DNA from: Mizuhopecten yessoensis
Lineage: Eukaryota
Assembly: GCF_002113885.1 (NCBI RefSeq)
Contig: NW_018408726.1
Span: forward strand, 1,154,613-1,218,612
Direction of reading: 5' to 3'
DNA length: 64,000 nt
Positions 4,480 through 51,699 of the stretch are shown here, in pieces. The position numbers and the translations under genes are program-made. The notes beneath the pieces were generated by a model, which did no database searches, had not been told where the DNA came from, and saw only the letters and a program-made list of their open reading frames with translations. The stretch's first letter is position 1. Each line of letters starts with the position of its first letter.

Positions 4480-5058
4480 GTTTGGTTTGGTTTGGTTTGG
4501 TTTTATTTTGTTTTACGTCCTATTAACAACTAAGGTCATTTAAGAACGTGCCTCCATGTGTGTTGTGTAAGTGTGCAAGTCTGTATGTATGCTGGAGACA
4601 GGGTATGTTGGTGTTCTTGCCTTCTTGTAATAGCGCGGATCTGATCCCGACTTTGTAGTGCTTTCTCACTGAAACACCATGCCGAAGGCACCCAGCACAG
4701 CATCCCGCCCGGTCACATTATACTGACAACGGGTGAACCAGTTAAGCAGGGAATAACCACTACTTTGTTTAAGGACTTTGTTATGTCCCGGCCTGTGGAC
4801 AGAATCCATTGACTTCCTCATCGTGGCGAACGTTCAACATTAAGCCAGAAGTGAGGTATTGCCAAGCTAGGCCCTAGGAAATTTAAGGTTGTTAGAAGAA
4901 GAAAGAAAGATAAAGATCACAAAAGTTGCAATAGTTGCAACAGATTTATTTTGGTCGCTTTTGTGTCCCAAATTAGAGGGCGCAAAAGCAAATCCCAAAT
5001 ACTGCAGGAGGTTCGAACATTAGTCTCCTCTTATGTTACATGACGTGGGTAACAGCAG
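4480..5058 (-). mobile_element. Near full-length composite SINE
   Basis: (GGTTT)n tail at 4480; reverse complement aligns along 54336-54906, including the head TTACCCA...TAAGAGGAGACTAATGTT...CCTGCAG; possible 7-bp TSD AGTTATA (4472/5057). Confidence 0.9.
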
Positions 5059-6295: not shown

Positions 6296-6578
6296 TGAAA
6301 AATGGTAGTTTCTACTCCTGCTTAACGCTCAGCAAATTAGGAGTGGGACGACCGGGTGGGATGTCCTGCTGGGTGTCTTCGGCAGTATGTTTCAGTGAGG
6401 TAGCACTATAAAGTCGGCATCAGTTCCGCGCTATCACAAGGAGACAAACACGAACATATCGCAGCCTCCCAAAATTCACACACATACACTACACGCATGT
6501 ATCTTGCACACAGGGGAGGCCGTCCTTAAACGACCTTACTTGTTAATAGGACGTTAAACAAAATAACACCAAACCAAA
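6296..6578 (+). mobile_element. 5'-truncated Meta/Deu-like SINE
   Basis: AAAAATGGTAGTTTCTACTCCTGCTTAACGCTCAGCA, GACCGGGTGGGATGTC...TTCAGTGAGGTAGCACTATAAAGTCGGCATC, tail ...TAATAGGACGTTAAACAAAATAACACCAAACCAAA. Confidence 0.9.
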
Positions 6579-10502: not shown

Positions 10503-11605
10503 TATTTCAAAAAGAAAAGATGGTATGCGCCAAAGTATGGTATCCTTCTTTAAGACCGACATTGTAAAATACGATACATACTAGCACTACGCTGGTATTG
10601 GTTTTTATTCGCTTTTTTACATTCAGGAAACGTGGCTTTAAACTTTAAAATGTCTTGCAATCACATTTTCACTATATTTTGATATTCATACGGATTGGTC
10701 ATATTTCCAGAAAACTGCTCTTAAATTTTACAGGTGTAATTATCGAAAACATTCATATAAAACGGAATATTTCAAGCAACACCAGATACATATCCTTTTA
10801 ATAAAGTTATAGTAAGTCCAAAACTGTAAATTTCTTGAATTTACCTTAAATTATTTCTTTATTCATTATTGCACATTAATAAGTGTTAAAGGTATACAAC
10901 CGTTTCAGCACTTAAGATGTCTATCAATTCTTCCTCCAACTTTGCTACTTTTTAGAAAGATCTCTAGGCACCTGTCTCCATGACGCTTAACCCGGGACAA
11001 CAAAATCGATTACACTGCAACAGTATTATCGATGAAATGATAAGATTATATGGGAGAATTAAGATAACACATGTTTGTTTAATATACAATTTCAAATTTG
11101 TGGCAATTTAAAGTGGATTCATTTTTCTCCGGAAGTATAGCCTCATAATGATCAAACTTTTTGTGTCATTTCCCGGAAAATATGTCATAACGGTTATCAT
11201 TTCCTCATTGCAAAATGACAAAGACATTTGTGTTTAGCTATTTATTTTTTATACATTCTAACTACGTCTAAAACACAGATCAAATATATAAAGTTTGTTC
11301 TAAACAGGTTTTTTTAAGATTGATATAATCTTCATAACTTAAGTGTTCACCACCACAGAATGTACATAACTGTATCAGGTACATCATTAACTCATTGACT
11401 AATCTCATCTTGCTGCTCCAGTCGTATATGGCACTCAAATATTCTATCCAGAAACACATACACACCGTTATGTCTTCCATTAATATTCTAATCCAAATCA
11501 CCAGTTTAAGTGAGGAACACCAGAGATAAAAAGTCTTCACGTTGAAATTGTATCGGATTTCCAGGCTAAAAGAGTGATTGTTTTTATTGTCGTTCTTGAC
11601 TGGCT

Positions 11606-11908
11606 TCAAACCGGAGAAGGGGTATGTATTTGACACCATACCTCACACTCCGTGAACTCGGCACGGCATTCCATTTCACAGGGTAGTAAAAGCAGCCTCT
11701 CTTGCACTTCTTTCCGACATTTAGTCATACAGGAAGTAAGTTCAACCCTGCAGTCAACACAACACGCCACGATGCGTACATTACGATTCAGTACGTTGTC
11801 ATCATTCACGTCGTCACATTGCGGTTTATTGCTCGCTAGAACGCCTGCATTACACCACACACAGATGAGAAGCACGGCCAGAACGTAGTTCTTATTCGTT
11901 CTTGAAAC
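11606..11908 (-). CDS. Coding exon of a secreted cysteine-rich prepro-peptide (helical-hairpin toxin/defence-peptide-like)
   Basis: Acceptor TTTTGTTTCAG at 11909; hydrophobic signal NKNYVLAVLLICVWCNAGVLA; acidic pro-region ending RNVR; 55-aa mature part with CCX2CX6CX3C-X12-CX3CX6CX3C; TGA at 11606-11608; AATAAA ~18 nt downstream. The ORF-track start at 11941 is in the intron. Confidence 0.85.
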   Translation of the reverse strand, partial: VSRTNKNYVLAVLLICVWCNAGVLASNKPQCDDVNDDNVLNRNVRIVACCVDCRVELTSCMTKCRKEVQERLLLLPCEMECRAEFTECEVWCQIHTPSPV

Positions 11909-12082
11909 CTGAAACAAAAATATAATATTTACTATAGACATATACTATAATAGACACTCTTTATTGAGGATAAACACATGTTTAGCCATGTACCAATCTT
12001 CCGCATGATCCTCAAATAAATATATGTCCTACATATACCAGAAAAACACAACATACCACCACAGCTAGAACAAGCTTCTTGT

Positions 12083-12540
12083 TCAATTTCAATTTCAATA
12101 AATTTTATTGTCAAAGGACAAATGGATTGGGTAGCAGGCACAGCCTATTTAAGCCCTTTCCAAACATAGTAACAGACAGTGGTACAAGCATAGACATAGA
12201 ACACATACAAACACATATAAACAAGTTGGTATTATCAAATTAATAATCAAATTAGGGGAAACAACTACTAATACTCATTTTTATTATAATTGAATCTAAT
12301 GGTTTGAATTCTAACCTTTTATTTTGATATTGAAAAGACATAAAAAATATATACCGGTATATACATATTATGAAGAGAAAAGAAAAATANTAAAATAATA
12401 TAAAAAGCTTCTTGTTCATCACTGTAACAAGAAATAAACGTTCGTTTTGTACTATATTAGACAATAAATTAATATCTGATGTGAAAGACTCTATATCAAT
12501 ATGAATACAGGTATTCTGGAGATGGCTCAGAGGTTCATTA
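12083..12540 (-). mobile_element. LINE 3' end (CR1-group-like) with (TTGAAA)n tail, interrupted by N at 12390
   Basis: Reverse complement ends GGGCTTAAATAGGCTGTGCCTGCTACCCAATCC...AATAAAATTTATTGAAATTGAAATTGAA. Confidence 0.55.
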
Positions 12541-12739
12541 AAGATACTAGACGCTTTTACTAGATTACACGTTTATATATATATCAATTAATTTGCACAT
12601 GACTTTGCTGTTTGGAATGATACCAGCACAGTGTGATCTAGTTTCTGTATCAAAAATCGTCAAAAAAGAAAATAACATGCAATTAGCTATTTATATATAA
12701 TACATACACATGTTTTGGCTTTGATACAATATGATGTGT

Positions 12740-12840
12740 GTAACGGTTTATTACTGTAAGGAGAGGGCGCTCATAGGCTTTGTTTGTTGCCCAACTCCTT
12801 TGTATCTAAGATCTGAACAATAAATATTCCAAAATGAAAG
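12740..12840 (+). mobile_element. LINE 3'-UTR tip (CR1-group-like)
   Basis: TAAGGAGAGGGCGCTCATAGGC...GCCCAACTCCTTTG...AATAAA resembles the LINE tails at 12083 and 29190. Confidence 0.45.
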
Positions 12841-13070
12841 GAAACAATATAGCGAAGAGTAACACAGGATGCATAACAAAATAAAGACAAACAATGCAAT
12901 GCCATAGATTCAGAATTCAGAATTATATAGATTTGTATGTATTAAAGGATTCCCTTGTATTGTCGTTTCGGGAAGACGTATTGAAATATTGTTTTGAAAA
13001 ATGATATTCAATTGAACATCTGACTAGTTTATGTGAGGGAAGCATTGAAATTGCAAACGAACCAACAAAC

Positions 13071-13190
13071 CTCGCACCCAATGAACTAATTATAATTCTA
13101 AATATCTTCTCTCAATGAGGCCTGATGATAATCCGTTGACAATGACTTGCCGTATTCATATCACCATGAAAATAATCCAGCTTATTTATA
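13071..13190 (-). promoter_or_regulatory. Candidate TATA box and non-coding first exon for the peptide gene
   Basis: TATAAATA at 13190-13183; possible donor GAG|GTTTGT at 13071/13070; linkage crosses the N at 12390. Confidence 0.25.
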
Positions 13191-14809
13191 TTGAATAAGT
13201 CAACAATCACTGGAAGATTCTGAGCACAAATCTTGTGTCACGTTAATTATTCAAATTGATTTTAGAATTATTTCTGCTATTGATGCTAGACACTATCGAG
13301 CAATAGGAATAAATGCTAAATTAAAAATCGTGTGGATCTTTATTATGTACAACATCAACTTTGATTAATCTAATCATCCAAATGATAATTTGTGCTGACA
13401 TCGATCAGATTAAGTGATGGAATATATGGTTATTAATATAGATCAGACTGCTGAGTGTTAAGGACAGAAAATAGAAAGCTATGCACGTGCAATTCCCGTA
13501 AACATACCATTAAAACAGAGACAAGTATAATAAATAGCTAAGGAGAGTTAACCTCAATTTCATGTCGTATTCACATTAAGTGTGTCAGCCAAACATGCAA
13601 TAAATGTATGTAGATAGATATTTAATGTACCGGCAGTGTCTAATGAATTGAATCTAGACACAGATTCATGTTGAATTTGATGATTATTTTCTGTTGGATA
13701 ATGTTAAAACTCCTGTATAACTAGCGAGCTTCGACAAAGATTAACTTATGAGAACTAACGACAAGTTATAACTACATGTATGACCGTTATATTTCATTTA
13801 ATGGCGGAATTGTCGGGACTTTGAGTGAAATGATATGCGTGTATTTTTTTGTTCACTCTGACACACATTTATGTGTATGACAAGAGTCCATATACATTAT
13901 ACAGCTTCCTAGCATGACAGGTGAGGCGGACAAGTATAAATATTCAACAGGCTTAAATGTGTATTATGATGCATGCTTAACTGCTGTGGGTCTTGATTGG
14001 GTGTGCCCGGGAGTACTAAAACTTGGTGGTGCTGGAGGAGTACAGCAGTAGCACAATTGAAATTTTATACGGTAACAATTGATCAAATACCCCGGTTTTT
14101 TTTGGTTCTGCGACACCTTAAGAGCTACGCATAAATCAGACGTTTTTGTTTCCAATTTTTTAGAAGCTAGCCATACTCTTGCCTCAGTGTAAGATATTCA
14201 GCTTTTGGACATTAGTTGACTTGGGTCACAGGTATCTTCCAAAACGAGGACTGGATTGCTGTTTAGGTATTAACGATACACCAGAGGTTACGTTGTCTGT
14301 ACCTCTGTGATATTTAATGACAAAACTGGTGGCACGCTGCTGATATTTGATAAGTATCGGTTAAACAAAAAAAAAAACAGTCGCTTTCTAAGCCAAATTT
14401 CATTTAGAAAAAAAAACATATTCGTGTTGTGCTGATTTCTCGCCTAACGACATGATAAAGGACACTAACCTAGATCATAATATTTTCGGCCACAAACCTG
14501 TGTTTATCGACAATTCTGAATATATATTAATTACATCAGTCCTTTTAATTATTCATTAACTGTATATTCGCTCTATTAAATATACCTCAGTTTTAAAGTT
14601 GTAAAACGTGTAACTTATGAATGTTGTCAAGTCTTTCAATAACAAAAACTTGATTTCTTGCTGCATTTAAGTGTACTTGTGAATAAGAAGATTTAGGACG
14701 TGAATAAGTATCAAGCATGTTTGTACTTTCATTTGTTTTTCAAGACCTCATATAGACCTAGTATGCACTGCCCTTATGTAAATTGACAGGGAAACGCTTC
14801 TATATATTA

Positions 14810-15047
14810 AAAATGTATGACGTTTCGGTCAAGTGGCACCATTGGTTAGCCCGATTTTAGAATAATGTAACCGGATTGAGTGTCGTGTGACTTTGTCAAG
14901 TTCATGATTCTGGTAAATTGACTGTGAAAGGTTTATTATAATTAAAACGTGTGATGTTTCCGTTCAAGTGGCTCCTTTGGTTAGCCCGATTTCAGAGTAA
15001 TGTGACCGGATTAAGTGTCGTGTGACCTTGTCAAATTTCTGATTCTG
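14810..15047 (+). repeat. Two-copy direct duplication (~100 bp, ~134-bp offset) containing a decayed SINE-core-like motif
   Basis: TCAAGTGGC...TTGGTTAGCCCGATTT.AGA.TAATGT.ACCGGATT.AGTGTCGTGTGAC.TTGTCAA occurs twice. Confidence 0.85.
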
Positions 15048-15546
15048 TGTAATGGCATTTTAAAAGAGGTCCTTAAATTGGCCTTTTATCTATAGACCCA
15101 TTATGTGTATTACCTAAGCTATAGCGACGAAACAAATCCCCTTTTAAAGAAATAATGTTCAGATCGTTTGTAACGAGGAACTGAAACTCTAATAAATAAA
15201 CATATAAGTGGTTGTTCGTGGCTATACGTGGTTATGTATATATTATTTATTATTTTACAAAATTCTTGTTTATTTTTGCATCACTGTCCATTTATTGTAG
15301 GCTGTACGTTTCTCCTAATCATAGGCTTTAAGACTCGTGTCGCCTTTGCTTAAATATTAATCAGTGTGAAAGCAATCAGTCTTATTCAACCGTTACATTT
15401 AAATAAAACCACACAAAACCGCGAACTGTAGAGCAGATTAAACTGAATATATTCTGTTTAATGCTGTACGAGTGTGCTAATAGGCTTTTCGAAAACGAAA
15501 AGGGCCGACGTGATTTTCTGTGGAAATTACAATAGAGAGAAATTAG

Positions 15547-15724
15547 CGGCCAGGCGTCATTAGATTTAGTTCGTAGTCAGGATTAAAAATAACTGGATAT
15601 ATGATTAAGTAATATATAAGGTTCAGAATTAAACATAATCTGCATAATGTAGTGTGTCTTACAGTATCTTATTGTAATATTTTTTATAATAAAGTCAATT
15701 ACATATTTCATTTTTAATATTGTA
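15547..15724 (+). repeat. Dispersed direct repeat, copy 2
   Basis: See 10377-10502. Confidence 0.85.
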
Positions 15725-15874
15725 GATTAGAAAGAAACCTTCTTAGTAAAACATACCAAGATTGATTGGTGTTTGCAATACAGTTCATGATATACCTTTG
15801 TTAACATTGACTGAAACAGTAAATAGCGAGTACATTTGCGCAAGATGATCTGAATAATTGAATAAAAGTCAAAA

Positions 15875-16092
15875 GCCAATTTGTTCAAAAGGTGATAAGC
15901 TTAATCAGGGATTAACGCATTTTTTGTGTGTATTTTTTTACACAACCATTGAATTAGTTACAACTTTCCAGATATCTTATATTTAGTAGAGTAAGTTTAC
16001 ATACAAAATTGTTTAATTTTCCCCTTGTATATTGACGAAATGATTAAAGGTTGAAACAGAGATTAAGATAACCACCTTTTGAACAACTGGGC
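15875..16092. mobile_element. MITE, PIF/Harbinger-like TIRs
   Basis: 32-bp TIRs at 15875-15906 and 16061-16092, 27/32 match (GCC.A.TTGTTCAAAAGGTG...CTTAATC). Confidence 0.75.
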
Positions 16093-16808
16093 TCATGTGT
16101 TTAAAAGTAATGGTTTTATCTTGCTTTTGTATCATTAAACAGTTAATTAAAATGTCTTAGAACACAAAACGATCAAGGATTAATACTGAAAAGATATGTT
16201 ATTGTCACAGATATACTATAAACTCACAAATAGACAGTGTTTTTTAAGAATTCCACAGGATAGAACACACTGCAGAGGAGGTGATTTTGCATAGGTTAAA
16301 AAACAAACCGTTGTGATTTTTTTTTAAATCCATGCTTGCTGAAAAGCAAACAAAGCATTCATGAGGTTTCTCCTTTCATAATGTTAAATTGGATATTATT
16401 TTTCCGTGAATGAAATTAAAAACAAATCTTGTATTTCCATTTTTAGACAAACAAATGGGGAATAACTTTTTTAACCGTTTAAAAAATCACATTCATTAAA
16501 AAAAATACTTTATCTAGTTAAACTATGTTAATTGTCTACGTTGTTCTGATATAATTTATATACAAGATTATGAAACACAAACATTGAGAGTTTTCTTCTG
16601 TCAAAAATGAATAGTAGGCACATTTCCAGTTAGAAACACCCTTGTAAATCCAGGATCGACTCGATAACATACATATAAATAGACACATGCGAATATAAGC
16701 ATTCAAGTGGACTATCATACGTAGCTTACACATAGAACTAGTTGTTTGTGGCTTTTTCACTAATATTATCTAAATACTATCTTGTAGTTAGTAATTAGTA
16801 ATTAGTAG

Positions 16809-16990
16809 TACAGACCCGTTCACGTTCGCTGTTCCACTTTCAGCGTACCGTTTGCGTAGCATTTCCGTACCGTTTGCGTAGCACTTGCGTACCATTTCCG
16901 TACCATTTGCATAGCACTTCCGTACCGTTTGCGTAGCACTTCCGTACCGTTTGCGTCCAAGGTGGAACAGCGAACGTGTACGGGTCTGTA
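16809..16990. mobile_element. MITE with TA TSD (Tc1/mariner-like) and internal 22-bp tandem repeats
   Basis: TA-CAGACCCGTTCACGTTCGCTGTTCCAC vs GTGGAACAGCGAACGTGTACGGGTCTG-TA (28/29); interior (CGTACCGTTTGCGTAGCACTTC)n. Confidence 0.9.
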
Positions 16991-18096
16991 GCACTATACA
17001 TGAATGTATATGTCTTTGTGTGCTTTATCACATACTTTATACGAATGTGTTATACCTAAATGACGTCTGAAATGTTCATTGCTATTCTTTAACTACCATT
17101 ACAGTGGGCAAAAAGAACCAAATGAAAATAGAACATCTGAATATGGTAAGGAACTAAAACAAAAGAGCGTACCGTAGTATCAACAACAAAATAATTCGAA
17201 CTGATAGTCAATAAAACTAGGGCAAAATGTGATAAAGGCAAGATTTACACGAAGACCTATGAAAAGTACTAGGAGAATAAGAATAGGTGGTCCGGAAATT
17301 TGAAGTTGTATAAGACTGTTGCATCATACAAAGCAGAGAAACTGTCAAATATGTAGGTGTTGTAACATTTGTACGGTATTTTCCCACACAGAATCAGTCA
17401 CTCTGAGTAATCGCTAAGAATAGCAGGGTGGCTGCAAGCAACCGTGCACCAGTCAACCATTTTACACTGCCACTCATTGTTTGGGTGTTAATACATGTAC
17501 TTTATACAGTGTTTTGGTTTTGTCAACGTCTCACTTACAGTTAAGGTCACATAAGGAAAGGTGCATGAGTCGCACTGCCAGAAATATACTGCAGTTAGAA
17601 GAATAAAGGCAAAGCTACATGTCTCAAGAGTTACAATAGAGAAAGCGGATCAGCGGAGCAATGTAGGTTTCTTCAATTGATCTCTTACTAGGCGTACTTT
17701 AATTATGATACCTTAAGACCTATATCTTAAGGTATGTCCGTCAAGACAAGAGGACCTTCGAAAAAGCTTTTTTCACAGCATTGTAAACTTGATATCAGGA
17801 AAATGTTGTTTTTTTGTCTGCGCGTAGTCAAAATAAAGAGCAATCTTCCAGAACAAGTAATCTCGGCACCAACAGTAAAATTCCGAAATTCTATAAAAAT
17901 TGGAACTGTTTTCACAGTTTATTTATTTGAGTCCGATGTAGAGGATCTTAAATAATTCTGTACCGTTAATAAATTTAACGTAATTAAACTTTAGACAAAC
18001 GCGTATAAATACCGTTTAATTAATGCACCAAATAGTACGTTTTATACCTAAATGCTACCATCAGGTTGTTATCATCAACGTTAACACGTACTTTGT

Positions 18097-18160
18097 CTCC
18101 ACCACACGTCCTTAAACTACCTTAGCTGTTGTTATGACGATTATCAAATACAACCAAACC
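18097..18160 (+). mobile_element. V-SINE-like 3' remnant
   Basis: CTCCACCACACGTCCTTAAACTACCTTAGCTGTT...CAACCAAACC. Confidence 0.55.
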
Positions 18161-19399
18161 AGACTAATCAAAGTTAACAGAATCAATTATAATAAAGAAC
18201 CGTATATCATATTGAGTATTTTTACTGGAAAATATTGTTTGTTTTGCCGATTAAGTAAATTTGGTCCTGAATACTAGGCCTATTCCTGCATAAAAAGTCG
18301 TTTCAGATTCAATCAGGAAGGAACAGCCATTGATTGGTTTCAAGAGATAGACAACTTTATTTGGATATGATAATGTATTTACCTGAATTTTTGCGAAACA
18401 TTTTAGTTAATAAATATAATTTGGTCGTTTACGTCATTCTTGCATGCGATGCTTACACCTCTTCTAGAGGTTTACATGAATGATGTAAAAGAGTGTTCTC
18501 AAGATAACGTAACGCATTGGACGTCCAATTGGTAATAGCGAGTTGTTCCTTACAAAAATGGCAAATCAAGCCCCCTTTAAAGGATCATGGCTTTAGATTG
18601 CGCTGGCGGTTTTTGTTTTACAAACACTACCAATTCAGACCTTGCACTATTTCATTTTCTGTATCTCTAAGTGTCCACCTGTTAATAGATAGAAAATAAG
18701 TAGGCCTTAGGGCTCCCTGTTGGGTTATTATGTGGTTTATTAATTTTAAAAGCATGACCGAGTAAGCAGTAAATTGGCTATCTGTTGGCAATCTTAGTAT
18801 ATATATGAATATCTATTTTATATCTAATGTTCTCATTTGTTATCATGTGTAAATTATAATATTATATATATATATATAATATACATCCGGCATATAAAAG
18901 ATGTCTTATTAATAGTCATATATTCAATTTAAAATTTATTTTTGTCATCAGACATGACTCAACTTCGCAAATATAATGTTGACCTAATGAAACTTTTTGA
19001 TTGATGGTTGTGGTCAAAATAGTTAGTGTATGATACTGAGTCTATAAAAAGCATGTTAATGTAATCTTAACAAGCCTTCAAGTGAACTTGATGCTGATCG
19101 TGTGTTTGTTAATTAAATTTGAATTTAAATTTGTATGTTTTATTGTCAAGCACATAACCTGCTTACTCCGGCACTGGATAACAATTATCTAGCAGTTGGT
19201 ATTAAAACGTGTAATATATAATTAAAGTTAATGCAAAATGTGTTTATAGTGTATACCAGATATGCAAATCGAATATGTGAAGAAGAAAAAACAGTCCCAT
19301 TCATTTTAGGCTGAAGATGCACTACTAGTGGGGTATGGTGTTTCCTGCTTATTGGACACCGAACACACCAAAATTGATTTACTTGTTAAACGTTCAGCA

Positions 19400-19465
19400 T
19401 TTCCGGTTCGGTTCGGTTTGGTTTTATTTAAACGTCCTATTAACAACTTCAGTGATTTAAGGTAG
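19400..19465 (-). mobile_element. SINE tail fragment
   Basis: GGTTCGGTTTGGTTTTATTTAAACGTCCTATTAACAAC. Confidence 0.65.
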
Positions 19466-19619
19466 TCAACAACCAGGGTTATAAGAGGACAGGTGCCAAG
19501 GGAGACACCGCCTGAAACAGAAAGTAGACAGAAAAGAAAGAAGACAGGGAAGGTAGAAAACGTAAAGTGTTGCAGAGGAGAAACATATCAATTTTGATCT
19601 CTTGTTTTGTCCAGTAATG

Positions 19620-19860
19620 ACGACAAATGGTTGAACCGTTGTCTGCGTATGCGACCGGTTAAAATATTACTTCGGCATGGTATTTCAGTGAGATAGCATT
19701 ATAAAGTCGGCATCGTATCCGCGCTATTTCAAGGAGGCAAATAAACCAACATACCAGCTCCGGCACACATACACAACAGCATGCGTACATAACATTCACA
19801 AAAAACACGTCCTGAACGATCCCATCTACCAATAGGGTGTTTAACAGAATAAAACTAAAT
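19620..19860 (+). mobile_element. SINE Deu-like body and tail
   Basis: TTCGGCATGGTATTTCAGTGAGATAGCATTATAAAGTCGGCATC...CACGTCCT. Confidence 0.8.
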
Positions 19861-22393
19861 CCCATTGCAACACTTTTGACCTCCATCCATCCTTTTTCCT
19901 CCTTCATTATCTTCCGCTCGGCGACTGTGTGTGTCTCTCTCTCTCTGGACTCCCGCCGTGATCTTAGCTGAAAATCCATGAACAAATACACCACAGTGTA
20001 CAGCTAATACGATTAGTGTGTTACAGTGTTTCCACGCTGTCTGTGGTTTTGTACAGTTGAAGGAAAAATTAATTATAAAACATTAAGGTAAAGGAAAATC
20101 AGAACCATACAAAGTAACAAAATAAACGAGAAACTTAAAACCTATATCATAAACAACATTTAATCGGATTATTAAATTATTCTGCAGGAAAATATTATTT
20201 AAAGGTGTATCGAGGCACTAACTATTATGTGACTTTCGAGGATCATTTTATCAAGGTTTAGAAACCATTCTTAGAGCTTTCAGTTGAACAGGCCTATGTG
20301 TGCACACATTTAAGATTTGTTTTATTTTGGTATACATTGGAGTCATTCCCATCATTTTGTCAATAAACATACATGTAAACAAAAATTGACCTGTCAAACA
20401 AAAACGAAGAATAACTATTCTTAAATGTCACTATTATGACAAGACAGCGAAAACAAAATCACATCTGGTAGCTATTTATCGAAATGGCGAGAAGTGTCAA
20501 TATTATTAAGTAACAATTAAAACATTGTACAAAAACAAACAATGTTGCTATTTTATATCACGTGACTTATGATACATTGATAGTTTATCACGTAGACATA
20601 CAAGCCTTATTAAAATAGGAAATGCAAATAGTTGTTCGTGACGAAGGAAGACAGTTTTTGTCTTAATTAATTCTAAATTGATTATCTGAGTCGTAATACA
20701 AAAATAAAATATTGTTTTATTGCCTTCTTAGAAGGTTCTTAATCTGTAAGTTTCCAATTTTCAGATCAACATACTCTATGACGTTTTGATGAACTATAGA
20801 ACAATAAATTTCCTTAGTGACGTTGACACATGATTACATTTATAACAATTTCGACATGGGTTCCTACATTTCCTGACAAGTAAAACTCATTATGTACTTC
20901 ATTGTCCCTCATACGTCGAGCTCGCTAGCTTATCTACATGACTTCGTATCGTAATGGCCATTTATGCAATGCTTTATACTTCAACTTATGCCCGGACAGT
21001 CATAATTTCATGAAAACTTACATAAATACATGCATTAGAATAATGACAACTTAGCATTCGTCTCACTTAAAACCACTCTATATGCAAAATGCAACTTCCA
21101 ATTTAGAGAAAATGATAAAACTCATATCCAATAAAAAAAGGGATGTTAATGCATGAATAATGTTTTTGAACCATTATTTTCATGCATTTGAAGGGATCAA
21201 TCGGTAAGTAACGATAGCTGGGGAAACAAGTATATGGTTCTTCTCAACCAATGTTAAAATGGATTATATGTTACACATCTTACTCTAAATGGAATGATTA
21301 GAATATTTCTTCATCAACTCAACCTTTGACGTGTTAGCAGTGTTAATGGAACATTATTGTGGTTATGTTGGATTTGAGAATCACAGAAGACGTCCTATAC
21401 TCTTGGTGATAAAATGTAATTATCAATCTTCTATTACGTCGTTACATAAGACATTTTTCCGCTGATGAATCTCTAAAGAGGAGAAAGCGATAGTAAAGTC
21501 GAAGAAACTCTTGTCTTTTGTTTCTTTTATATTTAACCATCATAAGAACTTTGAAATGTTTTTTCTGATAATATTTATATTTTTATATTCAATAACTTCG
21601 ATAAACTGGTGCCCTGACATTAATCTTTTTCTGAATGAACTGATACAAAATAATATTGATCGATTTGTTTTATTGATGCACAGTCATCTATTAAAGTAGA
21701 CAGGGAATAAACTAAAACAAACTCGGTGACAAAATGAAAGAAAAATAATCCAGTGTCTTTGGACAATATGTAGTCACAGTGTGATGGTAAGCCTGTACAA
21801 ACATGCTTGTATGTAATTGACATGATAAACAATCTCGAAATGTTTGTTAATAATGAGTAGTACTAACACACGTCCGCTTTATAGAAATTATGCATAGTAG
21901 AAAAAATATAAATGCTAAAATGTATTTTTATTCAACAAATGGTTGACAAATTGTATAAAAGGTGGTTCATATAATCAAAAAGACTCAAATAATATTTTTA
22001 ACAAATTGTTAGTGTAAAGTTGTAAACAAATTACATAATTTGATGATTCAATGACCGTATGATAAACACGCCTTAGTAACGTCATGGAAACACATTATAG
22101 GTTACAAACCCTGAAATAAAACTCATTATTTGCTTTGAACTTCATACAATTAGATTATAAGTGGATAGGGTCTAGTTACTTACCATGTTCATCTGTGAGT
22201 GGTAGGTCTGTTAATGCCCGTCTGCTGCTTTCTGTGTGTGCATATATATATATTCATTCACACAGACACACATGAAATATGTATGGTATATTAACTAACA
22301 ATGATTCATTACGTACATGTAATGTAACAAGACAGGCGTCAAACATTTCAGATATACACTTATAGAAAAAAAATCAGAAGTTTCTCTTTACAG

Positions 22394-27812: not shown

Positions 27813-29297
27813 GCATCTGGTCCCGACCTTATAAGTCCTCGTTTGATTAAGGAAGCTGCCGATATTCTTAGCTATCCACTACAATTCCTATTTAACCTTT
27901 TGCTCACTGAATGTATTTTTCCGTCATCTTGGAAAACTGCTCATGTGAAACCAGTATTTAAAAAAGACGATCCATCTACTTTAAGTAATTATCGTCCTAT
28001 CTCTCTATTATCAATTGTTGGGAAAATGTTGGAACGCTGTGTATATAAATATGTTTACAACTATCTTATCGATAAATCTGTATTAACACCCTTCCAGTCT
28101 GGTTTCAGATCCGGTGATTCCACTATAAATCAACTTCTATCTATTTCTAATGATATCTTCTCTGCTCTGGATAAAGGTAAAGAAGTCCGAATGGTCTTCT
28201 GTGATATCAGCAAAGCGTTTGACCGAGTATGGCATCGAGGCCTTCTTTCTAAACTAAAATCTTTCGGCATCACAGGAAATGTTTTACTTGGTTCTCAGAG
28301 TACTAACATAATCGCTGTCAACGTGTTGTTATAAATGGTAAACAATCTTATTTAGCATATATCACAGCAGGTGTTCCACAGGGATCAATTTTAGGTCCAC
28401 TGCTCTTTTTATTCTTTATAAATGATATTGTCAAAGACATCGATTGTACTATAAAGCTATTTGCTGACGATACGTCTCTATATGTCAAAGTGGAGTCACC
28501 GGATCCGAACGCAAACCTGTTTAATAATAATCTAATGAAAATTCACGATTGGTCTAAAACTTGGCTTGTAAATTTTAATCCTAACAAAACTGTAACAATG
28601 ACTGTTGGTAAGAAACTCGAAAAAAATCCTCCTCCAATGTCCTAACTACCAGCAGCTGAGAATCCAATGTTTTAGTCTCCTAACTATAGTGTATGCTTTT
28701 TACTTTATGGTAGACCCGAACTACGAATTCACTTAAATGAAACTATTTTTGACTGTGTTCAAAATCATTCAGTCTAGACGTTTTTGAAGAAATTTTAACT
28801 TCATTCATATCAGTTATCTTGTTTGTTGTGGTGATACTTGCAATTACTTGAATATCGCATTGGTCTGCGTAGAGTGTTACAGATCATTAGTGCCAGTTAA
28901 GAATTGCATTTGTAGTTTTAATTTGTTTTCATAACATACTACATAAACTTTCCACAACATGTACAGACACAGTGCTCTTTCGTCAAATATCGTTTGTATT
29001 CATGCAATCAGCGCTTGTTCTCTCAATGCAGTTTTGATGCCCATCGCTTCCCCATCAAACATCATCCCCATTCCACTTTAAATCCTTGCATCTTGTCTCT
29101 CTCTTTTCCCTGTACATGTTATACTTTATATATATATATTTATATGAATTATAATATTGTCAGTACTGATCCATAGCTGCTGTTATGTCTATAAGGAGAC
29201 GGATTTACATAAGTACTATGTACTTGCTTCTGGATCCTTTTCTATATTTATAACCATGTACTATTGTAATTTAACATCAATAAAATAAAGTTTAAAC
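27813..29297 (+). mobile_element. 5'-truncated, internally deleted CR1/L2-group LINE with pseudogenised reverse transcriptase
   Basis: ASGPD, NYRPISLLS, QSGFR, DISKAFDRVWH; frameshift and stop near 28290-28305, then GVPQGSILGPLLF, LFADD; tail AATAAAATAAAGTTTAAAC; TAAAACTGTAA on both sides (27802-27812, 29298-29308) as TSD. Confidence 0.95.
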
Positions 29298-30517: not shown

Positions 30518-33016
30518 TAAAACTGTAAATATTTCATGGTAATAATGACAGTGCCATTTCTTCTATAAAAATATATTTTAAAACGGTGTTCGCATAATGA
30601 GTTAGACAACACATAAAAATATCGATGCCGATTAATAGTAAGCTGTCCTCAAAATGAACTCGCAGTTTGTTAATATGCTTTGAAAATACCGATCCTCTTT
30701 TCAAATTTACGGGCGATTATCTTATCAAGTCATATCAATTTACCAAGATCTTACTTGTTTAAGGATGCACACGGCGTCAACACTCAATGACAGAATTAAA
30801 CTCAACGCCTAAATAACACGGCACCGGAAGTAAAACGGATGTCATATAAAAATATCAAATATGATGAAACCAAACGAAAAACCCTAGAGATGTGTAGGCG
30901 TGACCTGTACAACACGTGGCATCAAGGGAAAAATATAGGTTACCTGGGGTCAAGGACACGGCGAGAAACTGGAACCCGGATTGAAATATAAATTAGATCA
31001 CTAATGATGTCCTTGATAGATTGTCAGCGTACATAAACGTATCGCCGCCAGGAAAACGCGTCTAATTAACTAATTGTTAGGAAATCCTGACCACTTGAAA
31101 GGCTTAAGAATCACCTTTGATAGATTAACTACCTTAGCCGTGGTGTTTGGCACGTTAATAAGGAGGAAAAAAAGGTTAACGATCGTCAAGATAAATCTTG
31201 GTAGTGCGTTGACCATAATTGTCATACTGTATATCCAAATTTGAGTCTGGCGTAGAAGAGTCTGTGATATCTTTAAGGTCCAGTTCAGTTCTAAATGTGA
31301 GGCAAATATTTAAAAAATATCAATATTTCAATAGTCCACAGGGGTTCATTCATTGATAGCGGTCACACAGAATATCTGGATAAAGTAAATAAGACCCCAA
31401 CCCAAGTCAGATACCTTTATCACAAATCATAAATAAAATGTGTAACGTCATATAGAGTGTTGATCAGAGGACGGGGCTAGCTCCGATATAGTACTATTTA
31501 TTAAATAGAAATAATTGAATAGATATATATTTTCAAACATTATGAAAGCGATTATTTTTTGCATCGCTGAAAGTTTATCTCAACAATTCTACAATGCATC
31601 ATCATTCCACAGTAATTGGCCTTTCAGTGTTCCTTGTGATATTTAAATCATTCACACACCCTACAGTTCAGTCATGGATGACTGATTAATTCAATTTAAC
31701 ATTTGTTGAACCGTTTAATTATTTCTAATCAGCTAAATGCCACATACTTAAAATGTTATCCTTGTGATATTCAATACAATATCAGAATATAAAAGCGAAT
31801 TATTAATATGAAATGATATTTTATCATATCTATAAACTTTGATCTCTATCTGCAAAGCATATGGTTGGTTTCAAATTTCCAATTATTTATTTTTCTATAA
31901 ATGTTCATTTGGTCATCAATCAATTTTGAACAGGTGATATTTTGGATAGTATAATAGTATACCTTTATAGATTTTTTTATAGATGCTAGGATTTAGAAAT
32001 AACCTAATCGTACGAAATTAAGATGATATGTACGTATACCCTTATATAGATAGAAAAACGGAAAAAGAATCCGACATCAATTAGACATGTTATTACAAGT
32101 ACTGACATTTTCTGAGTTTAAACACATGTCACTTAGGATAGGGGCGTGTCGTCGAGCGTGGTTGTACTTTTTATAGAATTAATCTTATTATAAATTAAAA
32201 TATTATCTGTTTCCATGTTTCTGTAGGTTCCATGTTGTCTTCCCTTCTCTTTGGTGTATTGCTTGTTCCTATTCCTTTCCCTTCTTGCAGACTTTAAGGT
32301 TTTAATTGTCAACAGTGTATTGTAAACGCAGACAATCCTACGCTTAATTATGGAAACAGATAATGAGTAATTGGTCTACCGAGTTTTAAATTTGCCACAC
32401 GAATATTCATTCTTAGAACGTCAAAACAGTTGTCGTATTTCATTCTGATTTGTTTTTTCCATGTTCAATGAAACCGTATGAACAGGTTTTTTTACCATGT
32501 TGATTTAGTACAATTACAATGTTTTCATTGATGTAAAAATCATTGATTCGAAGACGATGTTCAACGCTTTTTTCACAAACACCTCTTTACTGCTTTGTTT
32601 TAATTGATAAAAAAACAAGAGAACGCCTAAGTATCAACAACACTGCATTTTGAACTAACAGTTCGGTAAAGCAAGAAAAAACAAACAAAGGATGGTTTAT
32701 ATCGAGACCCGTGAAAAACGACAAGGACAGTAAGACACCACTCCCCACGTAAATCTGAGTCAGTTCAAAGTCACCAAAACCAAATCAAGGTAACGTCTTC
32801 AAAACCTCTTCTGAAAATGAAGAGATAACTTTTAAAATAATAGCTTTCTATGTCATTGTTTTATAACAAAACATATTGCAATATTCCCAAGTTTATGAAC
32901 GTTTATGTTTTTTTACTAGAAGGCAACATATCCACAAAGTATGGTAAGTCGAAACGTCTAAATGTGAATAACACAGGGATCTCAATGATGTTGCTCCATG
33001 TTTTCAAATATTCAAG

Positions 33017-33432
33017 TATACCTTCCTACTACAACCCACTTACTACTCAAGTCGAGTGTACCTTCCTACTACAATCCACTTACTACTTAAGTCTAGTGTA
33101 CCTTCCTACTACAACCCACTTACTGCTCAAGTCAAGTGTACCTTTCTACTACAATCGACTTACTACTCAAGTCGAATGTACCTTCCTACTACAACCCACT
33201 TACTACTCAAGTCGAGTGTACCTTCCTACTACAATCCACTTACTACTCAAGTCGAGTGTACCTTCCTACTACAATCCACTTACTACTCAAGTCAAGTGTA
33301 CCTTCCTACTACAATCCACTTACTACTCAAGTCAAGTGTACCTTCCTACTACAATCCACTTACTACTCAAGTCAAGTGTACCTTCCTACTACAATCCACT
33401 TACTCCTCAAGTCGTGTGTACCTTCCTACTTC
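33017..33432. repeat. 40-bp tandem repeat, ~10 copies
   Basis: Unit GTACCTTCCTACTACAATCCACTTACTACTCAAGTCGAGT. Confidence 0.97.
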
Positions 33433-38089: not shown

Positions 38090-38425
38090 TCAACGTCCCA
38101 CCATCAGCCAAGGTCATTTAAGGACGTGCCTCCGTAAATAAAAAAAAAAACTTGCATGTGTGATGAAGGCAGAGTATGTTGGTGGAATAACCTCCTCGCA
38201 ATAGCTCAGATTTGATGCCGACTTTATAGTGCTATCTCACTGAAATACCACATCGAAGGCCCCAGCCTAGCGTTCCGCCCGGTCAAATTATACTGGCAAC
38301 GGGTTAACCAGTTGAAGCCGTTACCCTATATGCTGACCGTTAAGCAGGGACTATCGACTACCACTTTGAAGACCTTTGAGTGTCCTGGCCTGTTGATAGA
38401 ACCGATTGCCTTCCTCACCTCAGTG
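38090..38425 (-). mobile_element. Meta/Deu-like SINE
   Basis: CAGCCAAGGTCATTTAAGGACGTG; GATGCCGACTTTATAGTGCTATCTCACTGAAATACC; TTAAGCAGGGA; GCCTTCCTCAC. Confidence 0.9.
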
Positions 38426-40183
38426 AACTTACAAAGATCCCAAATATGAATCATCGTGTGAGGGAACTAGTTTGCGTTTTTATTGTGAAAGTTTACTGGT
38501 ACATGTACCCGAACCTATCGATCAACGGTAAAGGAATTTCGTTCCACAATAATATCTTTTTGTTTCAACATGACTTCATAAAAGCCATTAAATCATCGCT
38601 TAACCTGTGTCCCAATAGTAATTTATATATTTAATTTAATTTGGTAATGTCATATGCATGTGTCAATATTGGACTGTTAGCGGAGAACCAGCTGTGCGGA
38701 TAACCACTACAGAGTTATCGCCATCGTTGATATCATTTTATAACCTTCAACATGACATTTTTATTGCGAACAATGATGTAGATTGACATGGCTGTCTGGT
38801 CGATATCATTACTAATTTAAGCTTTCCCCTTCTTGGTGCAAATTTATACAGAGCAGTCTTATTCTTCAATGATTCAGCGATTGTTAAACGCGTTGCCAGT
38901 CATAAGCATGTGGTTTTGACTTTCAACAGCGTTTCAAATTCGTCTTGCCATACAAACAATATATACGACTCACCATACAAAAATAAGCCAAACATACACC
39001 GTTATAATTCATGAATGACAGTACATCTATTGAGAATATATTGATGCAAATTTCAAAATATGATCACATTTTATAGTGAAACTCTACCCAGACCAAACGC
39101 CACCTATCATTATATAAACAAAAAGTACATTTTATAGAGAAATAGACGTTTGAACAAAAACAAGTCCGTATGACAACCAAAACAGCAAAACGCAAATCGG
39201 TTCTTTAATGTTCCAATATCTTCTATTTAATATCGCTTTCCTGTAAGCTGATGTCGGAATGGAATATCTACAACCTGTCTGTAGGATTATATATTCAAAT
39301 TCAGCTGTGACAAATGTTCGCTTTAAAAACAGTAGTAACTTGAATTCATATTCATTTCTTCTTTCATTGTTGAAAGTTGTTGGATATTTTATGTAGAACT
39401 TCAACAAAAAAATTCTCTATATTTTATAAATAATTATAATATAATCTGGCAAAAGATCAAAATATGGAAAAAAAAACTTATATAAACCTGGCACGATTTA
39501 TTGTCAAATATCGACAATGGTTAAGAATATTAATTAGGAAAGCAAAGATGTTCTGTTATGATAGTTTCGTTACTCATTTAAATAAAATATGAAATATTGA
39601 ACAATTCTGAGAATATTTGTATTGCAAAAATATTCTTATTGTATTAATGTGTTTTTTTGGTGCACTTGTAAATAACTCGTAAACTTGTAAATAGTCTTTC
39701 AGCGTCTGACAGGTGATACATGTTTACACTGTTAACCTCTGTCTCACTCTGATTAACATTTGCAATAATACATACTGTTACATACATTATTGTCAAATAT
39801 TTAAAATCTGTTTTAATTCTTATTTCGTTAATGTAACGATGATATTTAACACACTTATTTTGTTCCTTATTTTCAGGCGTTGAAAGGCTGTGTGTTTGCT
39901 GGGCGAATAGTTCATAAATGTGCTACCGTCGTACTTAAGGTTTGGGGACTGCGTTTCGCTTTAATACTTTTTATTTAACAGTTGACATATGAACATGGTT
40001 TCCAACTGTGTTGTCTGAATATCTGCCATGCTAAAGTCTCATTCAAAATGTCTTATAACGTGGAGGATCTACATATGTTCCTTGATTTAAAGTAAGATAT
40101 TATGACTGGTTCCACATGTTTACCTTTTTATGGTATAGGTAACTGTTTTTTTCTCTGGTTTTCTATGGCGTTTGTGATGTCTT

Positions 40184-40270: not shown

Positions 40271-40314
40271 CTTTTACTTTTGGTGTGTTCTCGGTTTCCA
40301 TTTGACACCCCGAC

Positions 40315-40916
40315 CCCTTGTAGAACCGTTCCTTTCCCTCCTCTTGCAGAACCGTTCCTTTTCTCCCCCTTGCAGAACCGTTCCTTTCCACCTCTTTGTA
40401 GAATCGTTCCTTTCCTCCCCCTTGCAGAACCGTTCCTTTCCTCCCCCTTGCAGAACTGTTCCTTTCCTTCCCCTTGCGGAACCGTTCCTTTCCTTCCCCT
40501 TGCGGAACCGTTCCTTTACTCCCCCTTGCAGAACCGTTCCTTTACTCCCCCTTGCAGAACCGTTCCTTTCCACCCCTTTGTAGAACTGTTCCTTTCCTCC
40601 CCCTTGCAGAACCGTTCCTTTCTTCCTCCTTGCAGAACCGTTCCTTTCCTCCCCCTTGTAGAACCGTTCCTTAACTCCCCCTTGTAGAACTGTTCCTGGT
40701 CCCCTGTTTACAGAACCGTTCCTTTCCTCCCCCTTGCAGAACCGTTCCTTTACTCCCCCTTGTAGAACCGTTCCTTTCCTCCCCCTTGCAGAACCGTTCC
40801 TTTCTTCCCCCTTGTAGAACCGTTCCTTTCCTCCCCCTTGTAGAACCGTTCCTTTACTCCCCCTTGTAGAACTGTTCCTGGTCCCCTGTTTACAGGACCG
40901 TTCCTTTCCTCCCCCT
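40315..40916. repeat. 26-bp strand-asymmetric (C/T-rich) minisatellite, ~23 copies
   Basis: Unit CAGAACCGTTCCTTTCCTCCCCCTTG. Confidence 0.97.
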
Positions 40917-49900: not shown

Positions 49901-51310
49901 ACTCGCACATTTTAGTGTAAGTCGGATGTTTTCTAGTAACTCGTAGATTTTAGTGTAAGTTGGATGCATTCTAGTAACCCGTACGTTTTATTGTAAAGTG
50001 GATACATTCTAGTAACTCGTACATTTAAGTGTAAAGTGGATGTATTCTAGTAATTCGTACATTTTAGTGTAAGGTGGATGTTTTCTAGCAACTTGTAAAT
50101 TTTAATGTAAGGTGGATGTTTTCTAGTAACTCGTAGATTTTAGTGTAAGTTGGATGCATTCTAGTAACCCGTACATCTTATTGTAAAGTGGATACATTCT
50201 AGGAACTCGTACATTTTAGCGTAAGTTGGATGTGTTCTAGTAACTAGCACATTTGAGTGTAAGTTGGATATTTTCTAGTAACTCGTACATTTTAGTGTAA
50301 GGGGGATGTATTCTAGTAACTCGTACAGTTTAGTGTAAGGTGGATGTATTCTTGTAACTCATTCATTTTAGTGTAAAATGGATGTTGTCTAGTAACTCGT
50401 ACATTTTATTGTAAGGTGGATGCATTCTAGTAACCCGTACGTTTTATTGTAAAGTGGATACATTCTAGGAACTCGTACATTTTAGCGTAAGTTGGATGTG
50501 TTCTAGTTACTCGCACATTTGAGTGTAAGTTGGATATTTTCTAGTAGCTCGTACATATTAGTGTAAGTTAGATGTGTTCTAATAACTCGTGTAAGGTGGA
50601 TGTATTCTAGTAACTTGTAAATTTTAGTGTAAGGTAGATATTTTCTAGTAACTCGTACATTTTATTGTAAGGTGGATGCATTCTAGTAACCCGTACATTT
50701 TATTGTAAAGTGGATACATTCTAGGAACTCGTACATTTTAGCGTAAGTTGGATGTGTTCTAGTTACTCGCACATTTGAGTGTAAGTTGGATGTGTTCTGT
50801 AACTCGCACATTTTAGTGTAAGTTAGATGTATTCTAGTAACTCGTTCATTTTAGTGTAAGTTGGATGCATTCTAGTAACCCGTACATCTTATTGTAAAGT
50901 GGATACATTCTAGGAACTCGTACATTTTAGCGTAAGTTGGATGTGTTCTAGTAACTCGTACATTTTAGTATAAAGTGGATGTGTTCTTGTAACTCATACA
51001 TTTTAGAGTAAAATGGATGTTTTCTAGTGACTCGTACATTTTAGTGTAAGTTAGATGTATTCTAGTAACTCGTTCATTTTAGTGTAAGTTGGATGTGTTC
51101 TAGTAACTCGCACATTTTAGTGTAAGTTGGATGTGTTCTAGTAACTCGCACATTTGAGTGTAAGTTGGATGTGTTCTAGTAACTCGCACATTTTAGTGTA
51201 AGTTGGATGTTTTCTAGTAACTCGTACATTTTAGTGTAAGGTGGATGTTTTCTAGTAACTCGTAGATTTTAGTGTAAGTTGGATGCATTCTAGTAACTTG
51301 TAAATTTTAG
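47000..51310. repeat. 38-bp satellite array, ~110 copies
   Basis: Consensus TCTAGTAACTCGTACATTTTAGTGTAAGGTGGATGTAT. Confidence 0.98.
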
Positions 51311-51699
51311 TAATCAATGTGTTAGATTGATGATTTCTTCTGTAACAGCGTGGATGCTATCTATTAACCAATAGCCTATAGCATTATACATGTCTGTAGA
51401 TATGACCCACCGACTTGTTATATAGCCTAGCGATTCTCATAATGTGTTGTTTATATGTGATATCTATGTAGTAACATTAAGATTATCATATTCAATGTGT
51501 TGTGTATCAAATAGACGCTATCTGGTACGTCAAACACAGGTTTTCCTCATGTAACATATGGTTGTAGTCCAGGAACCAACAGACTTCAGTATCAACTGTG
51601 TAACATAAAGTCTTAATTAATTAATGTGTCAGACAATGATGTTAGCTAGAAACTAATTGACTAAGAGTTTATTTTGCTATCCATTGTACATGGACACAA

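Follow-up and report, generated by a model that had tools for sequence, protein, structure and literature searches.

The DNA examined here, called the window below, is a stretch of 64,000 nucleotides (nt) of the scallop Mizuhopecten yessoensis (contig NW_018408726.1), and all coordinates given are positions in that window. Its minus strand carries an intact gene with two coding exons, the second of which (11606 to 11908) encodes most of a small, cysteine-rich precursor. It is highly probable, in our judgment, that this gene is real and that its product is secretory. From the database searches described below, the gene represents a new sequence family, known from three scallops (Pectinidae) in which its members are unnamed. 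Based on predicted models, it is a new sequence family inside a known structural class, the disulfide-stabilized helical hairpins (CS-alpha/alpha). The reading that we favor, with moderate confidence, is that of a scallop-restricted, seemingly single-copy gene for a small secreted hairpin protein that likely acts as an endogenous ligand. Taken by itself, the ligand function is a more tentative proposal than the gene or the fold.

The reverse complement of 11606 to 11908 translates into 100 codons followed by TGA, with no internal stop. Position 11908 is not a start but a splice acceptor (tttttgtttcag, with the exon beginning directly after it), and a polypyrimidine run ending in cag precedes exon 2. 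The start codon lies 10.3 kb upstream in a first coding exon of nine bases (22192 to 22184, minus strand), where the junction reads ATGAACATG followed immediately by GTAAGT. The query for this exon was a 15-letter degenerate pattern that joined codons for the opening M-N-M of the orthologue in Pecten maximus to the standard donor consensus. This pattern matches the window exactly once, on the minus strand and upstream of exon 2, while dinucleotide shuffles (one mismatch allowed, both strands) gave an average of 0.05 matches by chance. The P. maximus protein begins M-N-M-A and continues with the common S-R-T-N-K-N, and the precursor obtained by joining the two exons has 103 residues, equal to the P. 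maximus model. The gene is laid out as follows.

22241 to 22256, minus strand: TATA-like run TGAATATATATATATG, a candidate core promoter read from the sequence, about 50 to 65 nt upstream of the start codon

22184 to 22192, minus strand: coding part of exon 1, preceded in the model by a short leader, ATG AAC ATG (M-N-M), then the donor GTAAGT at 22183 to 22178; outside any repeat

11909 to 22183, minus strand: intron of 10,275 nt, GT...AG, drawn from the splice consensus and the 103-amino-acid (aa) orthologue model, with the polypyrimidine tract before its acceptor

11606 to 11908, minus strand: coding sequence of exon 2, 303 bases, GC content 0.469, with 84 of 99 residues identical to the P. 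maximus orthologue

11583 to 11588, minus strand: candidate polyadenylation signal AATAAA, 18 nt past the stop

The 5-kb flanks of exon 2, in comparison, have GC contents of 0.33 and 0.32, and both exons lie outside every repeat of the window. Since its GC content is raised, it avoids repeats, and it has annotated orthologues of 84 to 86% identity in two scallop genera, we regard exon 2 as more than a chance reading frame. The 64-kb window holds no second copy of the gene. Further AATAAA-type hexamers occur downstream in AT-rich DNA, so that the one listed is one of several candidates. At the other end of exon 2, an in-frame ATG within the intron (11941, minus strand) adds 11 codons and gives an unspliced open reading frame (ORF) of 111 aa. 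The Ylistrum balloti model (114 aa) has a longer and different N terminus, in which the V-S-R-T-N motif is repeated. Either the spliced start of Pecten or the long start of Ylistrum may be an annotation artefact.

Another ORF on the same strand (11280 to 11639, minus strand, 119 codons) overlaps the gene in a different frame and spans its stop codon; its GC content of 0.35 equals the background. This ORF and the antisense ORFs were considered as genes and rejected as chance, given their background GC and the lack of any Pfam match. We take 11280 to 11639 to be either chance or a portion of the 3′ untranslated region.

The translation of exon 2 divides into a signal segment, an N-terminal extension, and a 55-residue C-terminal part (the 55-mer, whose own numbering is used for its cysteines). 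The segments are as follows.

11834 to 11908, minus strand: exon 2 part of the signal peptide, 25 residues, with R and K in its basic n-region, then a hydrophobic core, and V-L-A at the end of its c-region

11774 to 11833, minus strand: N-terminal extension or "pro-piece," an acidic stretch of 20 residues whose one Cys is conserved, ending in RNVR at 11774 to 11785

11705 to 11770, minus strand: predicted helix 1, residues 2 to 23 of the 55-mer, with Cys 4, 5, 8, 15, and 19 (DSSP of AlphaFold models); the variable helix

11684 to 11704, minus strand: predicted loop, residues 24 to 30 of the 55-mer, ending with four consecutive invariant Leu that form the tip of the hairpin; predicted local distance difference test (pLDDT) score, 67 to 69

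11624 to 11683, minus strand: predicted helix 2, residues 31 to 50 of the 55-mer, with Cys 32, 36, 43, and 47 (DSSP of AlphaFold models); Glu-rich and aromatic

11609 to 11623, minus strand: C-terminal tail TPSPV, invariant and nonhelical

A first-pass annotation of this DNA, made from the letters alone, had described a signal-like segment, an acidic piece with DDVNDD and a lone KPQC cysteine, an RNVR site, and two mirror-image CX3CX6CX3C halves separated by 12 residues. All of these are present in the translation, on the minus strand. The signal segment has canonical n-, h-, and c-regions, and its core reaches a hydropathy peak of 2.4 to 2.55 (11-residue window), with cleavage placed after V-L-A by the -3/-1 rule. 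It contains two Cys, one of which is replaced by Tyr in Y. balloti, so that this signal-peptide Cys at least is not structural. The 55-mer has cysteines at 4, 5, 8, 15, 19, 32, 36, 43, and 47, in the framework CC-X2-C-X6-C-X3-C-X12-C-X3-C-X6-C-X3-C, so that a 12-residue spacer separates the two CX3CX6CX3C halves and one further Cys stands in the CC pair. With the Cys of the N-terminal piece, the post-signal part has 10 Cys, an even number, in all three species. The 55-mer carries a net charge of -3, in agreement with the earlier description of the mature peptide as net acidic, and the 75-residue post-signal part carries a net charge of -4 (-4, -4, and -5 in the three scallop species). The peptide has a single His, which is not conserved.

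The protein searches used exon 2, with exon 1 contributing just three more residues to the precursor. Among 5.8 billion proteins, a word-indexed search returned one 90% cluster with two members, XP_033760623 from P. maximus (103 aa; LOC117342551) and XP_060072179 from Y. balloti (114 aa; LOC132552056), each named "uncharacterized protein" in RefSeq and together 84 to 86% identical to the window protein. All 10 post-signal Cys are conserved across the three scallop genera. An exhaustive phmmer search over 1.84 billion 50%-identity representatives recovered only the same scallop cluster, a three-sequence profile search of the protein collection found no relatives beyond it, and a metagenome contig scan found none. 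Literature searches by the RefSeq accessions and LOC identifiers of both orthologues returned nothing, and those on Toxin_13/PF07822 and on scallop eight-Cys helical peptides returned nothing relevant. Since no second cluster was found, the gene appears to be single copy in the two annotated scallops. The earlier suggestion of a possibly undescribed family stands, as no characterized family was matched in the Pfam, PDB-sequence, or protein searches; likewise, none of the Pfam models for defensin, mytilin, or macin matched, as had been anticipated from the cysteine framework.

The window's own protein did not match itself in either the word-indexed search or the profile search. Given its absence from the protein collection, the gene was probably not called in the source genome annotation. 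The same absence, in a window that is gene poor and repeat rich, might also be expected of an ORF that arose by chance or of a pseudogene in decay, neither of them functional. That explanation has to contend with an intact 100-codon frame whose product shares ~85% identity with the RefSeq models of two other genera and keeps its structural Cys, as well as with a GC island, canonical splice sites, and an exon 1 that agrees with the Pecten model, and we give it almost no credence.

Substitutions among the three genera are unevenly spread over the precursor. The variable columns of the three-genus alignment are distributed as follows.

Signal part: 6 of 25 columns variable

N-terminal piece: 4 of 20

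Helix 1: 7 of 23

Loop: 1 of 7

Helix 2: 2 of 20

Tail: 0 of 5

The 55-mer overall thus varies in 10 of 55 columns. Its residues 25 to 47 are invariant (0 of 23 columns variable versus 8 of 24 in residues 1 to 24; Fisher P = 0.004), a block running from the last residues of helix 1 over the four-Leu tip and through the core of helix 2, where its Cys lie. Helix 2 bears five invariant Glu as well as Phe and Trp. Internal duplication as the origin of the two halves is unsupported, with identities at non-Cys positions of 3/11, 1/11, and 1/11 in the three species.

A helical hairpin had been proposed from the cysteine spacing, and two independent AlphaFold2 runs now predict a helix-loop-helix. For the 75-residue post-signal part, the mean pLDDT was 82.9 and the predicted template modeling score was 0.68, with four of five models scoring at least 79; the model has a helix at residues 14 to 46, a four-residue turn, and a second helix at residues 51 to 70. 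For the 55-mer alone, the pLDDT was 77.3 and the helices were placed at residues 2 to 23 and 31 to 50. The eight-Cys ladder that the first-pass annotation envisaged is compatible with this prediction. On a helical wheel, the four Cys of either half span no more than 60 degrees, at angles of 0, 40, 20, and 60 degrees in both halves, and the pairs 4-47, 8-43, 15-36, and 19-32 share a constant register sum of 51, as an antiparallel ladder needs. Cys 5 lies 70 degrees off the Cys face of the ladder on the helical wheel. We consider a disulfide-stapled hairpin fold probable, and the placing of the Cys along the two helices suggests a four-rung ladder as its connectivity.

Structure prediction and Foldseek were among the checks suggested earlier; the hairpin was predicted, and no structural neighbor was significant. 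Foldseek searches of the PDB with both models, which have little power on 50-residue hairpins, returned nothing below an E value of 5, and neither 1VIB (neurotoxin B-IV) nor 6UX5 was among the matches; the expected acrorhagin I and B-IV were thus not returned. The best rows were generic hairpins (CnrX, the cytochrome bc1 hinge subunit, and NuA4), none of them significant. Since there was no significant Foldseek match, the assignment to a fold class rests on secondary structure together with Cys geometry. Two features that characterize the helical-hairpin class are found in the scallop peptide as predicted, namely, two antiparallel helices joined by a short loop and paired CX3C motifs on facing helix sides, with two CX3C per helix.

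How the precursor matures bears on the number of disulfides in the product. RNVR had been read as a convertase-type site that releases the 55-mer, and the motif is conserved as RNVR or RNIR in the three species. R-X-X-R is the minimal furin-type cleavage motif, which the site fits. Cutting after RNVR would give a 55-residue peptide whose ninth Cys is free, forms dimers, or is bonded to the pro-piece, as the first-pass annotation had also imagined for the Cys of KPQC. The acidic stretch before the site resembles a typical pro-region, the resulting length of 55 residues is that of B-IV, and the 55-mer alone is still predicted to form a hairpin. However, P2 is not basic, making the site weak, and the piece before it is conserved as much as the hairpin part (4/20 versus 10/55 variable columns). 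Furthermore, helix 1 of the 75-residue model begins at residue 14 of the N-terminal piece (mean pLDDT of 88 over residues 11 to 20) and continues through RNVR at a pLDDT of about 88 to 92, so that AlphaFold places the site within the helix with high confidence. Cleavage would also leave an odd number of Cys, nine, unless the pro-piece stays bonded, whereas the uncut form has an even 10. Since the pro-piece is equally conserved, helix 1 spans RNVR, and the post-signal Cys are even in number, convertase cleavage is uncertain, and we place release of the 55-mer at a little short of an even chance. A 75-residue, five-disulfide product is as possible as the RNVR-cleaved one. On the predicted models, the fold may include the N-terminal piece, whether tethered after a cut or never cut. 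The product would be a single chain of 75 residues with five disulfides or two chains joined by a bond between the N-terminal Cys and Cys 5.

The first-pass annotation had named the nemertean neurotoxin B-IV as having nearly the same Cys spacing, which proved a fair lead. The Pfam family concerned is PF07822, Toxin_13 ("Neurotoxin B-IV-like"), with a profile of 55 positions and a gathering cutoff of 21 bits. Neither the 100-residue exon 2 nor either full-length orthologue gave any Pfam match. The 55-mer alone gave one subthreshold match, to Toxin_13, with an E value of 0.19 and a score of 12.3 bits; other cuts of the peptide scored 11.7 to 11.9 bits, with E values of 0.19 to 0.31 overall, and no other Pfam family appeared at an E value of 10 or below. 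This match is limited to residues 4 to 22 of the 55-mer, that is, helix 1, which aligns with profile positions 37 to 55, where the C-terminal helix of B-IV lies. The second half of the 55-mer, with identical Cys spacing, had no Toxin_13 match, and the resemblance of helix 1 is therefore more than Cys spacing alone.

We asked whether the scallop peptide might have a genuine, if distant, kinship with the nemertean B neurotoxins and protect the scallop as a peptide toxin from crustaceans and other predators. That Toxin_13 is the sole Pfam family to surface speaks for such kinship, as does the fact that molluscs and nemerteans are both lophotrochozoans. B-IV is itself a 55-residue helical hairpin with four disulfides and helices at 13 to 26 and 33 to 49 (PMC6410017). 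B-II and B-IV have a central loop of 10 residues and the beta-nemertides one of 16 (PMC11126048), a range that accommodates the 12-residue loop found here; the eight-Cys spacing fits the Toxin_13 framework as well, and the hairpin fits it by prediction. Against this, the score is far below the cutoff, and the two helices do not match the profile collinearly, since helix 1 pairs with the helix of the wrong end. PDB sequence searches with the 100-mer, the 55-mer, and a three-sequence profile did not return 1VIB and gave as their sole row a chance match to a G protein-coupled receptor fusion (E value of 3.3). B-IV is toxic to crustaceans, and Arg-17, Arg-25, and Trp-30 are required (PMC6410017). 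Judged on its net charge of -3 to -5, the scallop peptide does not share the essential basic character of the B toxins (Arg-17, Arg-25, and an aromatic residue 30). Its gene is also seemingly single copy and conserved, unlike typical toxin families. The likeness to B-IV thus holds for the loop and for the Pfam family that surfaced and fails on score and on the helices aligned; we would place the peptide, by its predicted fold, in the same structural class as B-IV, whereas the sequence comparisons do not support membership of the B-toxin family, and kinship with those toxins seems improbable.

We return to the reading favored here, a secreted hairpin ligand. Upon cotranslational entry into the endoplasmic reticulum (ER), the signal peptide would be removed after V-L-A. 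Oxidative folding in the ER would then bring the C-terminal 55 residues into an antiparallel helical hairpin with the ladder disulfides 4-47, 8-43, 15-36, and 19-32, and the tenth Cys, that of the N-terminal extension, would bond the odd Cys 5. With such a bond, the extension would stay attached with or without a cut at RNVR. The product would be secreted and act extracellularly as a very stable miniprotein ligand. Its working surface may be the invariant, Glu-rich outer face of helix 2, which bears Phe and Trp, together with the hydrophobic four-Leu tip, and the outer face of helix 1 would be free to vary. Given the single-copy appearance of the gene, its net acidity, the invariance of residues 25 to 47, and ~85% conservation that includes the pro-piece, the product most likely binds a conserved partner in scallops. 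A hormone-, pheromone-, or recognition-type signal is hence the most likely role, ahead of an antimicrobial peptide or an arms-race toxin, and the molluscan pheromone attractin is, by analogy, an earlier example of a small disulfide-bonded peptide that signals through the water.

Several points weigh against this reading. Only three closely related sequences are available, so that ~85% identity may partly reflect short divergence, and the same three sequences made up the whole, shallow input alignment of AlphaFold2. The fold found no significant Foldseek match, and single-copy status was judged on annotated proteins only. All seven substitutions in helix 1 are at least 70 degrees from the Cys face, but so are most non-Cys positions, leaving the helical-wheel test without power (P = 0.08 to 0.28), and we did not use it as evidence. 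Finally, the acidic, conserved character of the peptide weighs against a toxin or antimicrobial role without excluding either.

An antimicrobial or antifungal defense peptide of the alpha-hairpinin type would be in keeping with the abundance of Cys-rich antimicrobial peptide families in bivalves. Pairs of CX3C-Xn-CX3C on a helix-loop-helix, which is predicted here, are the hallmark of alpha-hairpinins (PMC11591084, PMC11722136). However, alpha-hairpinins are four-Cys, cationic peptides of plants, whereas the scallop peptide is an animal product with 9 or 10 Cys and a net charge of -3 to -5, has no sequence match to any antimicrobial family, and is encoded by a seemingly single-copy gene that is highly conserved between genera. 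We think this role quite unlikely. Scarcely better placed is a role in the extracellular matrix (that of the shell or mantle, for example) or in cation binding, in which the acidic protein would work through the Glu-rich face of helix 2. The five invariant Glu, Phe, and Trp of that helix would suit it, and so would a secreted, acidic, Cys-rich product confined to a shelled lineage. Yet the net charge is merely -4, the protein lacks the Asp-rich or low-complexity repeats that matrix proteins typically have, no matrix family was matched, and the literature search by identifiers gave no link to a shell proteome.

An acidic, conserved, seemingly single-copy hairpin with four rungs and a fifth bond, in a filter feeder that is not venomous, would extend the range of uses of a scaffold otherwise known, in its disulfide-stapled form, from venoms (nemertean B-IV, acrorhagin I, kappa-KTx, and one conotoxin) and from plant defense peptides. 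It would also provide a compact, very stable natural framework with a clearly marked conserved face. For scallops, broadcast spawners of commercial importance, it would add a candidate to a repertoire of peptide signals about which little is known. There is a small chance of a more far-reaching outcome, in which the gene founds a new scallop-specific family of five-disulfide, acidic helical-hairpin signals, such as a water-borne spawning or recognition cue, or is the first molluscan descendant of the B-neurotoxin scaffold. In the latter case, the fold would be of lophotrochozoan origin and older than its use in toxins. Mollusc genomes are rich in lineage-specific Cys-rich orphans, and if expression proves ordinary or absent, the gene would be one more of them. 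The locus also shows a gene probably missed by the annotation of its source genome.

Elsewhere, the window is rich in repeats. At 27843 to 28331 on the plus strand, an ORF matches the Pfam reverse transcriptase family RVT_1 (E value of 1.7e-16) over profile positions 3 to 98 of 205; the match being partial, it is presumably a remnant of a host retrotransposon. Tandem arrays account for most of the long ORFs called mechanically and for the strong GC-skew swings of the window. These arrays, followed by two short ones in the intron of the gene, are listed here.

47004 to 51311: satellite-like tandem array, 38 bp × 113

51694 to 53442: satellite-like tandem array, 49 bp × 36

60031 to 61225: satellite-like tandem array, 29 bp × 41

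61665 to 63993: satellite-like tandem array, 34 bp × 68

40314 to 40916: smaller tandem array, 26 bp × 23

33015 to 33430: smaller tandem array, 40 bp × 10

14777 to 15052: tandem array in the intron, 135 bp × 2

16843 to 16956: tandem array in the intron, 55 bp × 2

An interspersed repeat resembling a short interspersed nuclear element, about 250 to 550 bp long, occurs in both orientations at 75 to 85% identity (2570 to 2813, 4489 to 5058, 6350 to 6578, 38153 to 38429, and 54333 to 54907). Within the intron of the gene, the translation of a GC-rich ORF (19662 to 20003) resembles that of the repeat copy at 4489 to 5058. Single N's stand at 12390 (in the intron), 29669, and 58374.

Among known systems, the cytochrome bc1 hinge subunit is the top Foldseek neighbor of the 55-mer model (e.g., 1bgy_H), with template modeling scores of 0.45 to 0.50, 21 to 24% identity, and E values of 6 to 9, which are not significant. 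The hinge subunit is disulfide stapled and, like the scallop peptide, a small acidic helical hairpin; it differs in being a protein of the mitochondrial intermembrane space without an ER signal peptide. The presence of a signal peptide, the lack of a Pfam match, and the E values of the hinge rows set the scallop protein apart from the mitochondrial twin-CX3C/CHCH hairpins, and we treat the hinge subunit as a fold analogue only, as far as the models allow comparison.

Attractin is acidic and has two antiparallel helices. The scallop peptide showed no sequence similarity to it: only Toxin_13 surfaced in Pfam, which presumably includes an attractin model, at an E value of 10 or below, and the PDB gave no sequence match. 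In Aplysia, attractin is a pheromone of 58 residues with three disulfides, and its precursor consists of a signal peptide and a single product (PMC3484142). Both are thus molluscan peptides of similar size with intrachain disulfides, but attractin has fewer disulfides and another Cys spacing, and the likeness is one of functional analogy only.

The nemertean toxins B-IV and B-II and the beta-nemertides (PDB 1VIB) share with the scallop peptide a length of ~55 residues, eight Cys of ladder type, and a helical hairpin, which in the scallop is predicted. They are basic, with essential Arg and Trp, whereas the scallop peptide is acidic and has 10 Cys, the extra Cys of the CC pair and that of the N-terminal piece among them. 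Moreover, its gene, apparently single copy, belongs to a nonvenomous filter feeder. Acrorhagin I likewise has two helices cross-linked by four disulfides, as predicted for the scallop peptide, to which it gave no sequence match and, in Foldseek searches, which have little power on 50-residue hairpins, no structural match. One disulfide of acrorhagin I joins helix to loop, and Zn and Ni are bound via several His (PMC11722136, PMC13608440); the scallop spacing, in contrast, predicts a pure ladder, and its single His is not conserved.

The disulfide-linked two-helix class has been called an emerging peptide-toxin motif (Krishnarjuna et al. 2021, as cited in PMC11722136 and PMC13608440). The helical-hairpin class includes acrorhagin I, kappa-KTx, conotoxin vil14a, and the plant alpha-hairpinins (PMC11722136, PMC13608440). 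The plant alpha-hairpinins, scorpion kappa-KTx, and conotoxin vil14a resemble the scallop peptide in carrying CX3C...CX3C pairs on two antiparallel helices, but they have four Cys and two disulfides in 20 to 40 residues and are mostly cationic. Compared with them, the scallop peptide doubles the motif to a predicted four rungs, adds a fifth pair, and is acidic. Altogether, with its acidic character and, as proposed, a doubled CX3C ladder and fifth Cys pair, the scallop peptide represents a hitherto undescribed variant within the helical-hairpin class.

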